Origin: Octopus bimaculoides
Taxonomy: Eukaryota
Direction: 5' to 3'
NCBI RefSeq assembly: GCF_001194135.2
Contig: NC_068993.1
Span: 44,393,177-44,457,176 of the forward strand
Length of the DNA stretch: 64,000 nt
Part shown: one piece after another, positions 49,901 to 61,900 of the stretch
Numbering within the stretch: position 1 is the first letter of the stretch
Layout of the letters: each line of letters opens with the position of its first letter
Program-made: the position numbers and the translations under genes
The notes under the pieces: model-generated
Seen by the model: only the letters and a program-made list of their open reading frames with translations
Database searches by the model: none
What the model was told of the DNA's origin: nothing

Positions 49901-52900
49901 CATTGAACTACATCTAACCACTTGAGCAATTGGGTTATTGTTATATCAAGGAGATAAAGCAAAGTTTAAGTGCATTACTCACGTCTTGTATTTATACACA
50001 AATGTACATGTACATACAGAATGATGTCAGTGGATCAAATTCTGGGCTTCGAAGAGAAGGTCTCTTAAGAGATGAATCTCCAAGTCAAAATATTGAATGA
50101 AAGCTAGTGAAAGAAATTTGTTGAGCTATTGGAGTTATGTCAAAACAATGGCTGGCAAGCAAGTTGTGATCCCAACAAGGTGGGATGCAGAGATTTGCAG
50201 GAAGTTCTTCTTCAGAACTTACATGATTTGTATCACAGGGGCCAATAGGCCAGTTTGTAAGCATGTATGTATGTATGTATATATATATATATATATATAT
50301 ATATATATATGAAGATAACAAGAGAAACAAATGGAAAACAAGACAAGTAACACAAAGAACGACCCTTCATCAGTCGTCAGCTGTCACTCTACTCCTCATT
50401 TCGAGCATTGAAGAATAATATAAGTCTTTGAAGATAGTTACTCCCATAAATACCAAAATAAAATTTTGGATTTATGGACGGTCAAAGTTGGGAACAAAAA
50501 CAGGACAGAACGAGGGTAAAATAGTGGATGCTGGAGAAATATTTTCTTTGAAAAGAGAAAAGATAGAAGAGAGAGATAGAATACGTCCAGTCCTTAGGAC
50601 ATTCCTGAAAGAAAAGAAAGATGGACGATGGTCACATGTGTGTATATATAAATAAATATATATATATATATGTATACATAATACATACATATATATACAT
50701 ACACATACATACATACATACATATATATATATATATATATATATATATATATATATATATATATAGATAGATAGATAGATAGATAGATAGATAGATAGAT
50801 ATATATATATATATATATAGAGAGAGAGAGAGGGAGAGAGGGGGGAGATACATTGTGAGCTACTTGGTGATCACTGGTGCTGGTATCATTTATAAACACC
50901 TGATACATTCTATAAAATGGTTGGAGTTATGGAGGGCATCCAGCCATACCAAAGGAGACATTGGGGCTTGACCTCTTGGTCATCAGATCTTATTAAACCA
51001 TCCAAAGCATGGAAAAATGAACATTAAGTGGTAATGATGATGATATATGACAGGCTTCTTTCAGTTTCCACTTTCTAGATTTGCTCAGAAGGCTTTGGCC
51101 AGCCAGGGGCTATAGTAAAAGACACTTGCCTATATTACACATGGTGGGACTGAACCCAAATCATGTAGCTGGAAAGCAAACTTCTTAACCACACATCCAA
51201 ATATAGAATAAGTATTAAATGTAAAATTTTGAATAAATATTTAAATTATAACATATTTTAAACTATTTGTTTGAAACAAGTCATCTTGAATCTACATTAA
51301 AAGTCCACACTTGTATGTACGCAATATGTTCAGGCCATGTTCACTGTCTGTTCAGGGCCAATAAAATAAAGTTTCAGTCAAATACTGGGATCCAAGTAAT
51401 TGACTTTCCCCCCTCCCCTTATAAAAATTCTGCTTTTGTGCCAAAACTTGAAACCATTATTTTTATTATTGTCATACTCATTTTCCTTCTAGGAATAAAA
51501 TGTCCACACAGAGGAGCTGTGCTCTCATATACATGGCGCCATAAAGAATTTCCTTACAAACCAGATGACAAAGAAGCATGTAATGTTTTCTTCATCTGGG
51601 AAATGCTGCGTCCACTTTTAAAAGGTATGTATGTCTGAGTTCACATTAATCCTTTAACAAACCCCAACAGGTCTACAGGTCTGGCCAATACTGAACCCTT
51701 GTTCCCATAATGATTCGATAACTGAACTATAAAATTCTTATCCATTATTTGGGAAACTGGTCTATTAGATATAACTTGTTTATCCCCAAGTCAGCCCTAA
51801 ACAGAACAAACCTATTATCAAAGATTTTACAGCTGTGACAATCCAATCTTTTCAGATTATCAAATGCAATGTTTTATTCCATTTTTAAAACAGCAAAGGA
51901 TGATTTGATTGGGATATGGTAACTGTTTCTAGCTGGTTATATATATATATGTACATTACCATGTATTTTATAACACTATTTCTGCAACATATTTTTGCAC
52001 TGTACATAAAGGGCCTTGACACCATGGTAAACTGGCATGCCAGGTGAAATGTTTAGCAGTATTTCATCCGTCTTCGTGTTCTGAGTTCAAATTCTGCTGA
52101 GGTCGACTTTGCTTTTCATCCCTTTAAGGGTTGATAAAAATAAGTACCAATTGAGCTGTGAGGTCAATGTAATCAACTAGCCCCTTCCCACAAAATTTCA
52201 GGCTTTGTGCCTATTATAGAAAGGATTATTGTCGTTGTTGTTGTTGTTAACTTTATTGATTTATTGGCATTTTACTAAAAGAGCTCTTAATCTTTTATTG
52301 ACATTACTACCAATGCATTCCTTTGTCTCCATGAATTAATCAATAAAGGAAATTTAAAAGACTTAAGACTGACTGTGTTACAGCAGACAGCCATAATATA
52401 TCCCAATATATTGCACATTAAATAAATAACATATTCTAACATATCCCACATTAAATAAAAAATAATGAAGTCTTTGTAAACACTGGTTTTCATTTTGTTT
52501 ATTTGATTTGTTCCAACTCACAGATTGAAACATATGTCAATGGAAACTAACCCAAGGTGGATAGACTATACTGTAATGGGCTTAAGATAGCCAAAGATAG
52601 TTATTATAGTTGTTGTTTAGTTTCAGGTCAGCCCTGATTGAGAAGACCACAGGTTTTGCATGCCTTCTGCTTAGGCCCCTATTTTTTTCTCTATTTGTTT
52701 CAATATTCTTTCTTTTATATATATCCTTGATATTCTCAACAGTTTGGCACCTTTCTCCAGTTTCCATTTCATCTTCAGCATTACATAATGGGGTGGCACT
52801 ACTAAGTTTCTTTGTACTCAAACTTCCTAGTTACCTCTTGGAATCAAGGAGGAAACAATCTCCTCTTCTATTTCTGAGGTGACAACAGGTGATAATCTCA

Positions 52901-58900: not shown

Positions 58901-61900
58901 TCAATGGAAAATTCACCCCCCACCACCACCATTGCTATGATGAACAGGAAGAAGGAAAAAACACTCAACATATAGTTAGAAACATTTATTTAGTCACATG
59001 TTTTTTTTTTCTTTTAAAAAAAAAAAGTATTTTTAGGGGTGGTAATAGTTTTTTAACATTGTATCATCGTTCTTTATTACAGAATCATTATATTCTGTGG
59101 GGAAGTTGTTACCACACCATTTTTCAAAAGGTGTATTGCATCTTTACCTCACATCCAGTTTGTCAACCTCTACAGCATATCTGAATGCCATGATGTTGCG
59201 TGTGTAGATTTAACGCAGTGCTATACACACGACAAGGTAAAGTGCGTTTTGGCTTTTTTTAACAAAAAAAAATGTTAATATTCATCACCATCACTGCCAG
59301 TATCACCAACACCACCACCACTATCATCATCATCTTAATCATCATCATCTTCATCACCATCATCATCATTTATTTTACCTCATCGCAATTTAAAAATGAG
59401 CTGCTGTTTAGTCGCTAAGTCGTCACTGACCATGCTGGTTATGGTCAAAAGCATTTTCATCCATGTCTATCTCATCGTTATAAGGGTATATAGAACAGAA
59501 TGCATTATATAATGTGTCCTTTCTATGTTTATGAAGGAACGGTATGATTTGAGGGGCATTTGGCTGGCTGCTGTTTCTAGCAGGCCAAGTGACCACATAG
59601 GGACTCCCTCGTAAGTTTGTAGTTGTTGATGCTACTGTTGGTGGTGGTGGTGACGGCAGTAGTGGTGGCAGCAGTGGTGGTGATGAGTTGTTGTTGTTGT
59701 TGGTGGTGGTGGCAGTGGTGGTGGTGGTGGTAGTGGTAGTGGGTTTTTTTTGTAGTTAATGAATTTAATCCTGTATTGTACATGTGTATGTATGTGTTTC
59801 TTTTGTTTAAATCTTAGTAAGTTTATGCGTAAGTTTGTGTGTGTATATGTTTGTGCTTATATGTTTTCATGTATATGCATATGTGTGTTTGTGTGTTTAT
59901 GTGTGACTGTTTTCTTGTCAGTATTATTTAATTTTTTAATTATTAATTTTACTAACCTGTAATTATGAACAAGATTTGGGCTAAAAAGAGGAAGATATTT
60001 GTAGAATACATGTGTATGTATGTGTGGATGTATGTGTGTATGTATGCACATGTGTTTGTATTTGTTTGTACATACATGTGTATGTTAGTGTATGTATATA
60101 TATTGTATATATCCATACATATGCACACAAATACATATACACATAAATACATATACATGCATGTATACCCTCCCATACACACACATATGTATTTTCATAC
60201 ATGTGTATATACATATATACATACATATGTATATATACATACATATGTATGTATATACACATATACATACATATGTATATACATATATACATACACGCAT
60301 ACTCACACATATATCTATGTGTGTTTATGTATATGCATGCATGTCTGCCTTGTGGTGGCTAGTTTTTCCTTTTCATGCCATTTATAAATGTTTATAAAAA
60401 AATGCTAATATGAAAATATATAAACAGGGAAAGGAATTATACAGACAGACAAACAGACAGAAAGGCAAGCAGACAGAGTGACAGACAGAGTGACAGACAG
60501 AGGGACAGAGACAGAGATAAAGGAAAGAGTAGCTGCTCTAACATCCCTTTTTACTCTTATTTCAATCCCACCATGGTTTACTATCTTCTACTATAGCCCC
60601 AGACATAGTGCATCAAAGACTACATTATCCAATATGCCTTTACTTAGATCAGGGGTTTTCAAACTGTGGTCCGCGGACCACAGGGGGTCCGCAAGGACAA
60701 GACAGCAAATACTTTTTATGGGCAATTTGATTTTATATATGTTTTTTAAGCGAAATCTTTTAATTGACAATAAACTTATTTGTTAAATACTGTTAAATAA
60801 ATAAATGTAAAAATATATGTTATTTTAAGCAAATATTTATGTGTAAATTTCATAAGCATTTATTAGGAGGTCCCTNNNNNNNNNNCAGCAAATACTTTTT
60901 ATGGGCAATTTGATTTTATATATGTTTTTTAAGCGAAATCTTTTAATTGACAATAAACTTATTTGTTAAATACTGTTAAATAAATAAATGTAAAAATATA
61001 TGTTATTTTAAGCAAATATTTATGTGTAAATTTCATAAGCATTTATTAGGAGGTCCCTAAGGTAAAGCCTGAAATATAAAGGGGTCTGCAAGTCAAAAAG
61101 TTTGAAAACCCCTGACTTAGATGATATGGTATAATTTGAAAGAGACCTTACTGCCATGTCTAGCAAACCAAGCAACCACATAAAGGCTCCCACATGAGTT
61201 TGTCTTTACACTGTTGTGTTATGCTATTCGATTGATGCTATTGCTTTCTCCTGTCATTAAATTCTTTTTTTATGTCTATCGTTTTAAATCTGTTCCTTAA
61301 TCATAAATTCTTCTCCTTCACTCACAGGCTGCTTTTGAAAGTCGGAAGTTTTCTCCAGTTGGTAAACACCTACCTAATGTGAAAATAGCGATCATGAACG
61401 AAAATCTGGAACATCAACCTGTAGGAGTGTCTGGTGAGGTAAGAAATCATACACACATGCACACGCACACACAAATACATACATACATATATACATACAT
61501 ACATATGTACGTACATACATGCATGCATGCATGCATGCACACACTTGGGTATATGCATCAACTGTTCAACCAACACACCAACTCATCCACATGTTTACAA
61601 ACACCGGGAACTCTCTTAACTCAAGAAGTATCATTGCTGTCAGTGACCAGCTTGAATTCTCAAGAACTTAAACTCATACATGCATACATACAAATATATC
61701 TATATACATATGTTCATCTACATACATATGATCATCTCCTATCTGACATGTGGCATGTTGTGCACCTGTACAAGTAATATCAATTTGATGGAGGGAGTGA
61801 GCTTATGTGTGCACAAACATTTGATAACTATAAAACAAATCATCTGTGTGATTGCTCAGAAGAAACTGCAGAACCCTCATATGTCCTCTAATAATGGAGG

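Follow-up and report, generated by a model that had tools for sequence, protein, structure and literature searches.

A probable ATRR-type, glycine betaine-activating adenylation domain encoded by an intron-rich gene of Octopus bimaculoides

Introduction

Which substrate is activated by the adenylation (A) domain encoded between positions 51493 and 59236 of a 64000-nucleotide stretch of the Octopus bimaculoides genome is the question addressed here. The stretch (NCBI RefSeq assembly GCF_001194135.2, contig NC_068993.1, positions 44393177 to 44457176 of the forward strand) is referred to below as the window, and all positions are given in its numbering. A first-pass annotation of the window had described a substrate pocket without the Asp that binds the amino group of amino acids and had suggested that the substrate is something other than an alpha-amino acid and may be a betaine, either glycine betaine or another marine betaine. 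The segment comprises exons 4 to 6 of an animal gene that is intact and rich in introns. This gene is very probably an animal orthologue within the ATRR-type family, and membership of that family would predict the same kind of substrate as the first-pass annotation. The encoded product is probably an ATRR-type adenylation domain acting on glycine betaine; for the identity of the substrate taken singly, the balance of the comparisons leans to glycine betaine.

ATRR from a fungus adenylates glycine betaine and reduces it via the aldehyde to choline (Hai, Huang and Tang, 2019; bioRxiv 10.1101/559534). The family has the domain order A-T-R1-R2, in which R1, a thioester reductase, precedes R2, a short-chain dehydrogenase of YdfG-like type. 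Homologues in invertebrates, molluscs included, are already on record in the literature: atrr genes occur in several protists and invertebrates (bioRxiv 10.1101/559534), and mollusc genomes are said to encode glycine betaine reductase homologues (PMC11869996). If the present assignment is right, an animal genome encodes a one-enzyme route from glycine betaine to choline, a relation between the two compounds that was long thought irreversible and for which biochemical proof of the reductive direction exists only in a fungus. Marine invertebrates hold large pools of betaines as osmolytes, and an enzyme of this kind could link such osmolyte stores to the supply of choline and phosphatidylcholine.

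Gene model and predicted fold

Exons were set by direct reading of splice sites, and tblastn searches of the window with six homologues gave the same eight. The resulting model is a split gene on the + strand (40743-63072) with eight exons, which join to 1284 nt and 428 codons (428 amino acids) with no stop. Every junction has canonical AG/GT dinucleotides and the reading frame is kept throughout. Exon 4 opens at 51493 (acceptor tag/G) and exon 6 closes at 59236 (donor AAG/gt). The window as a whole has a eukaryotic look: its G+C content is about 35%, microsatellites are numerous, N runs number 13 and long open reading frames of bacterial style are absent.

Two of the N runs fall between the first and last base of the segment under study. 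When these gaps were checked, both proved to be intronic (intron 5), and the homologues lose no residue at the junction of exons 5 and 6: in tblastn coordinates the two exons are contiguous in P0007 (240-302, then 302-363), in P0092 (7-65, then 65-110) and in P0064 (38-100, then 99-157). Because the homologues are contiguous across this junction, no exon is hidden in the gaps and the frame is undisturbed. The junction codon, AG/A, encodes Arg268, in a column in which the relatives have Lys, Arg or Gln. For annotation purposes, this provides a clean exon model in which the two gaps leave the coding sequence uninterrupted.

No further exon was detected by tblastn with the six homologues between 63075 and the end of the window at 64000; the gene therefore runs off the window. 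K517 (PheA numbering) lies outside it, as the first-pass annotation had held, the last exon detected ending at 63072. The C-terminal subdomain that carries this residue (the Lys of motif A10) and the expected T, R1 and R2 domains would lie beyond 64000.

The 428-residue model matches the whole of the Pfam AMP-binding profile (1-384 of 384, E = 2e-63), and its best solved relatives are adenylation domains of nonribosomal peptide synthetases (NRPSs), namely LgrA, TycA and GrsA-PheA (E = 3e-55). The structure predicted by AlphaFold2 from a 66-sequence alignment has a mean predicted local distance difference test score (pLDDT) of 93.7 and a predicted template-modelling score (pTM) of 0.92. Foldseek matches the predicted model to ApnA, Txo, TycA and PheA (1AMU) with TM values of 0.81-0.88. 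The core motifs A3 (P-loop), A7 (YRTGD) and A8 (KIRGY) are intact and A5 is present. The visible part of the gene is the N-terminal core of an NRPS-type adenylation domain.

Placement in the ATRR family

The closest database relatives, at 50-54% identity, are animal proteins of Nematostella, Bradysia, Coptotermes, Homalodisca, Panagrolaimus, Meloidogyne, Brugia, Mytilus and a coral. Over most of the model's length, no database hit exceeded about 54% identity; the top figure, 60-61%, belongs to P0092, a partial protein from a coral that spans roughly half of the model. The search of a representative library returned only giant multi-module NRPSs, since its scores are summed over modules, and included neither a closer relative nor a full-length ATRR.

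All of the closest animal relatives carry ACNVFFxWE, and those that are long enough have PP-binding and NAD_binding_4 domains after the A domain. The signature common to the animal and fungal relatives is NVFFxWE together with N[LV]YSxSE[CT]H[DE]V; in the fungal relatives the motifs read ACNVFF[TVI]WE, LWLNGE and NVYSASETHEV. The pocket is thus not new: it is the signature of the ATRR NRPS-like glycine betaine reductases. A neighbour-joining tree nests the model within the animal clade, with the nematodes as its neighbours, and separates it from the clade of the fungi. The comparison with ATRR made in the first-pass annotation was relevant and can be taken beyond analogy, the signature, the tree and the pocket together pointing to an ATRR-type orthologue.

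Introns at model residues ~167/168, 267/268 and 356/357 are common to the Mytilus and Nematostella genes; that at ~211 is shared with Mytilus and that at 319/320 with Nematostella. These shared positions speak against contamination and for an old animal gene that was inherited vertically. As for the region following the A domain in these two animals, no R-domain exons were found in the 10-kb downstream flank of the Mytilus locus, and the Nematostella contig stops within R1.

A group of relatives (P0012, P0018, P0047, P0051 and P0115, including a brown alga, an oomycete and bacterial metagenome-assembled genomes) has the same pocket with a thioesterase (PF00975) in place of the reductases, which suggests a different fate of the activated substrate in these proteins.

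Substrate pocket

The pocket code was derived against the 1AMU sequence, for which the index was checked to equal PheA numbering (D235 in FDASVWE, K517 in GKIDR). Three alignments were used: MAFFT over 122 sequences, an hhalign comparison of PheA with the family profile, and HMMER pairwise alignments. As first described, VFFIWE replaces FDxS and NLYSISE replaces NxYGPTE. The nine-residue visible code is V-F-W-L-I-C-L-D-V. At seven of the nine visible positions the MAFFT and hhalign alignments agree (W203 = 239, L242 = 278, I271 = 299, C273 = 301, L297 = 322, D305 = 330 and V306 = 331), and the earlier pocket code stands there.

The two remaining labels of that code, V235 and F236, are alignment-dependent and hold by convention only. 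Between D224 and W239 the family is five residues shorter than PheA, and each method puts the deletion elsewhere. An ungapped count back from W239, which is also the convention of the ATRR paper, gives V199 = 235 and F200 = 236; hhalign deletes D235-A236-S237. The absence of the amino-binding Asp, as first claimed, is robust at the level of sequence: ACNVFFIW contains neither Asp nor Glu, neither MAFFT nor hhalign sets an acidic residue at 235, and a new one is introduced there by no plausible alignment. Of the 118 family members, 117 retain F236 and W239, and all 112 that cover position 330 have an acidic residue at it, so the pocket pattern is not due to chance.

Aromatic cage and position 299

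The authors of the ATRR paper noted the loss of D235 and proposed a cage formed by F201, W204 and W270 with the anionic E304 (bioRxiv 10.1101/559534). In the octopus model these four residues of the Aspergillus nidulans enzyme map to F200, W203, I271 and D305, respectively. The spacings of the cage residues in the fungal members (3, 66 and 34 residues) are those of A. nidulans; the Phe-to-Trp spacing of 3 is found here as well, and D305 is 34 residues from position 299, as in the fungi. The cage idea of the first-pass annotation is therefore retained for F200, W203 and D305; that the third aromatic, the equivalent of W270, is an Ile had been overlooked. Read from the alignment, the aromatic cage is two-thirds conserved.

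Position 299 is Trp in 89 of the 118 members, and the remainder (Ile, Val, Leu, Tyr, Phe and His) are mostly in the animal-type clade. Since the animal branch does not conserve it, Trp at 299 was treated as characteristic of the fungal enzyme and not of the whole family. A Trp hidden by an error of frame or assembly was considered and rejected: the lone TGG in the vicinity is read in a different frame (ILWGS) and is at odds with the WLCGEVV pattern of the family.

Tyr or Phe is found at position 300 in 8 of 19 members with an aliphatic residue at 299 compared with 8 of the 99 others (Fisher p = 6e-4, ignoring relatedness). The 299-300 pairs are Ile-Tyr, Val-Tyr and, here, Ile-Phe, and members with Trp at 299 pair it with Leu; the nematodes depart from this pattern with Ile-Leu and Leu-Leu. 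From beta-strand geometry, the side chain at 300 is expected to point away from the pocket, and F272 can therefore not be said to restore the cage.

Proposed reaction and alternative explanations

The A domain would bind a small carboxylate with a permanent positive charge, most probably glycine betaine. With no salt bridge between Asp235 and an alpha-amine, the trimethylammonium group would make cation-pi contacts with F200 and W203 and would also be held by D305, whose carboxylate is close by. ATP-dependent adenylation would be followed by thioester loading on a carrier domain, and two reductase domains using NADPH, which like the carrier domain would be encoded beyond the window, would give betaine aldehyde and then choline. 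These steps are proposed by homology with the characterized A. nidulans enzyme. We also infer a downstream T-R1-R2 part and a physiological role, either in recovering choline from the betaine pool or in controlling that pool.

The fungal ATRR requires a positive charge and three methyl groups and rejects larger betaines and the 20 amino acids; 3,3-dimethylbutyrate, a neutral isostere, and sarcosine are inactive, dimethylglycine is about 100-fold slower and common carboxylic acids are inactive (bioRxiv 10.1101/559534). In Meloidogyne incognita, MiATRR (1306 amino acids, A-T-R1-R2) differs from A. nidulans at five pocket sites, with one site variable between His and Ile, and in yeast it relieves the growth inhibition caused by glycine betaine (Zhang et al., 2024; PMC11050029). 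Because a nematode pocket identical to that of the octopus model has a betaine phenotype, glycine betaine is a better guess than another betaine.

Several points weigh against the assignment to a glycine betaine-reducing ATRR. The third cage aromatic is absent, I271 (codon ATA, 59090-59092) replacing W270 at position 299, and the pocket differs further from that of the fungal enzyme by N301C, V322L and E330D. The cage rests on a homology model in the ATRR paper (bioRxiv 10.1101/559534), no ATRR structure having been found in the Protein Data Bank (PDB). Functional support in animals is limited to nematodes and to an indirect growth phenotype (PMC11050029). The A-T-R1-R2 architecture is not visible, T, R1, R2 and K517 being outside the window, and family members with the same pocket followed by a thioesterase, as well as bacterial members with a single R domain, exist.

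The replacement of Trp by Ile at 299 could also mean that the gene belongs to the same ATRR-type family with a shifted specificity, the wider pocket preferring, over glycine betaine, another small onium carboxylate of a kind common among marine invertebrates, such as beta-alanine betaine, proline betaine or a sulfonium analogue. We regard this as unlikely, although the departure from a residue found in three-quarters of the family (89/118), the strict size selectivity of the fungal enzyme with its Trp in place, the variability of 299 only in the animal-type clade (Ile, Val, Leu, Phe, His and Tyr) and the tendency of an aliphatic 299 to pair with an aromatic 300, as in the Ile-Phe pair here, all speak for it. 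A particular form of it, in which this lineage and other animals with an aliphatic 299 have an enlarged two-aromatic pocket (F200 and W203 with D305, backed by Phe at 300) and reduce a non-glycine betaine or a sulfonium osmolyte to the amino alcohol, is a slightly longer shot still; if true, it would be an undescribed reductive route in animals from a marine osmolyte to the corresponding amino alcohol. On the other side, the nine pocket residues are those of the Meloidogyne ATRR-type proteins, the M. incognita orthologue of which gave a glycine-betaine-dependent phenotype in yeast, and F272 need not line the pocket if residue 300 points away from it. Activation of a carboxylate other than a betaine, as in ordinary carboxylic acid reductases or in animal enzymes of beta-alanine type, is improbable; the candidates would be a beta- or omega-amino acid, its amine bound by D305, and aryl, keto and fatty acids. 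Loss of Asp235 is also known in A domains for aryl, keto and hydroxy acids, and the nearest canonical A domains (P0112 and P0114) carry a code of beta-alanine type; the Asp residues of that type at 236 and 331 are, however, replaced by Phe and Val, the pocket residues are conserved family-wide, and the characterized family member is inactive with common carboxylic acids, the 20 amino acids, 3,3-dimethylbutyrate and sarcosine.

A functionless copy, whether a pseudogene or a set of exons wrongly joined across gaps, has very little probability. The 13 N runs, two of them in intron 5, the exact 469-bp duplication around a 20-N gap in intron 1 and the fact that no close relative or transcript confirming the model was found would suit such a copy. 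Against it, the eight exons are ordered on one strand, in frame, canonically spliced and free of stops; six homologues align with them collinearly, and no residue is lost or repeated; motifs A3, A7 and A8 are intact, the intron positions match those of other animals and the window holds no second copy. Least credible of all is the reading as an ordinary A domain for alpha-amino acids, with Glu204 (the E of WEM) standing in for Asp235. One HMMER pairwise alignment, with LgrA module 2, sets E204 opposite the Asp of FD, whereas MAFFT, hhalign and the other HMMER alignment disagree; the alignment to PheA is ungapped from W203 (WEM..LL.G...YI), which makes E204 the equivalent of PheA E240, a residue also present in amino-acid A domains, and the fungal ATRR with the same WE used none of the 20 amino acids.

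Features of the locus

The exons, the pocket codons and the other features of the window are listed in Table 1. The tblastn searches with the six homologues gave the eight ordered, same-strand exons and nothing else, that is, no second copy of the gene in the window. Neither strand of the window yielded a second gene or anything else with a link to betaine or choline. An acceptor-like sequence, ttcaattacag, about 20 nt upstream of the ATG indicates that an untranslated 5' exon may precede exon 1.

Intron 1 contains an exact 469-bp direct duplication, the two copies of which flank a 20-N gap; this looks like an artefact of scaffolding or gap closing, not biology. A fragment of a Mos1/mariner-type transposase helix-turn-helix (HTH) region is located in the same intron (Pfam HTH_48, E = 4e-7), and this was the sole significant match in a Pfam scan of eleven repeat-like open frames around the gene. 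Further transposase- or reverse transcriptase-like frames gave no significant Pfam match and are presumably decayed repeats; one of them lies just upstream of exon 1 and another in intron 5.

Table 1. Positions of the gene model, pocket codons and other features in the window
Feature	Positions	Strand	Content	Evidence
Region with acceptor-like sequence	40700-40743		about 20 nt upstream of the ATG	
Exon 1	40743-40989	+	ATG and start of the adenylation domain	frame, GT donor, tblastn (Nematostella, Coptotermes, Meloidogyne)
Intron 1, duplication	42607-43075 and 43096-43564		exact 469-bp direct duplication	
Intron 1, gap	43076-43095		20 N	
Intron 1, transposase fragment	44905-45300	-	Mos1/mariner-type HTH	Pfam HTH_48
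Exon 2	45468-45584	+	core motif A2	in-frame AG/GT junctions, tblastn
Exon 3	47164-47301	+	ends within P-loop motif A3 (47274-51494, spliced over intron 3)	
Exon 4	51493-51624	+	A4 region; VFFIWE 51585-51602	
Exon 4, pocket codons	51585-51587, 51588-51590, 51597-51599	+	V199, F200, W203 (conventional 235, 236, 239)	
Exon 5	54119-54287	+	L242 (54208-54210) = PheA position 278	
Intron 5	54288-59082	+	both assembly gaps, microsatellites, decayed repeat fragments	
Intron 5, gaps	55870-55945 and 58159-58735		runs of N	
Exon 6	59083-59236	+	IIFCGE 59087-59104; NLYSISE 59165-59185	
Exon 6, pocket codons in IIFCGE	59090-59092 (I271), 59096-59098 (C273)	+	I271 = 299, F272 = 300, C273 = 301	
Exon 6, later pocket codons	59168-59170, 59192-59194, 59195-59197	+	L297 = 322, D305 = 330, V306 = 331	
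Exon 7	61328-61438	+	A6 region	frame, junctions, tblastn
Exon 8	62857-63072	+	A6 to A8; YRTGD 62968-62982, KIRGY 63043-63057; last exon in the window	
Unmatched repeat-like frame	16444-17064	+		
Unmatched repeat-like frame	19583-20040	+		
Unmatched repeat-like frame	25699-26304	-		
Unmatched repeat-like frame	39835-40452	-	just upstream of exon 1	
Unmatched repeat-like frame	57263-57652	+	intron 5	

Comparison with known systems

The model shares with GrsA PheA (1AMU) the fold (Foldseek TM 0.82, 28% identity), motifs A1-A8 and the W239-E240-M241 triplet. It differs in the absence of D235, in a loop that is five residues shorter before the 235-247 helix, in A5 (SIS here, GPT in PheA) and in the pocket (VFWLICLDV here, DAWTIAAIC in PheA). 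Asp235 within FDxS is the mark of A domains that activate alpha-amino acids, and on sequence the octopus domain does not belong with them.

The nearest canonical NRPS relatives are P0112 and P0114 (34-37% identity). Their code, VDWVISLADK in an ungapped reading from the NxYGxxE motif, is of beta-alanine type, resembling known beta-alanine codes and the animal enzymes Ebony and ACSF4-U26. They have in common with the model Val at 235, Trp at 239, an aliphatic residue at 299 and Leu at 322, and are distinguished from it by acidic residues at 236 and 331 (F200 and V306 here) and by an A4 loop that is seven residues longer. This hints that the betaine-activating domain arose from one that activated a small beta-amino acid.

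Bacterial A-T-R proteins (P0019 from a Desulfobacterales chromosome and P0016, which has a T-R gene beside it) are 43-46% identical to the model and have [IV]FFxWE and D330. In contrast to the octopus gene they have W299 (I271 here), no introns and a single R domain without R2, with which an aldehyde would be the product at most. Their loci (L003, 10001-12160, Desulfobacterales CP070768.1; L004, 10001-12978) are in chromosomes of 3.4 and 4.6 Mb, and the A-T-R layout is either one 720-residue protein or two genes, A and then T-R. The neighbourhoods of these two bacterial homologues contained no gene for betaine or choline that might have given independent support to the substrate assignment. 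The atrr gene has been described as exclusive to eukaryotes (bioRxiv 10.1101/559534); judging from the pocket motifs, the betaine-type A domain itself seems not to be.

The A. nidulans ATRR (AN5318; bioRxiv 10.1101/559534, PNAS 116:10348) resembles the model in lacking Asp at 235, in NVFFxWE, in L278 and V331, and in having N-x-Y-S-x-S-E-x-H for NxYGPTE; its cage residues F201 and W204 are F200 and W203 here, and the acidic residue at 330 is E304 there and D305 here. Identity to the fungal family members over the A domain is approximately 37-41%. The differences are W270 in place of Ile, Asn, Val and Glu at 301, 322 and 330 in place of Cys, Leu and Asp, and a gene that in the octopus is of animal type and intron-rich and of which T-R1-R2 is not visible.

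The nematode ATRR proteins differ from the model in having Leu rather than Phe at position 300 and in their A-T-R1-R2 architecture (1306 amino acids), of which only the A core is visible here; their function is supported by yeast and RNA interference (RNAi) phenotypes only. The proteins of M. javanica and M. enterolobii (P0003, P0007 and P0013) share the whole visible code VFWLICLDV with the octopus model, including Ile at 299, are 46-51% identical to it and are found in the same animal clade of the tree.

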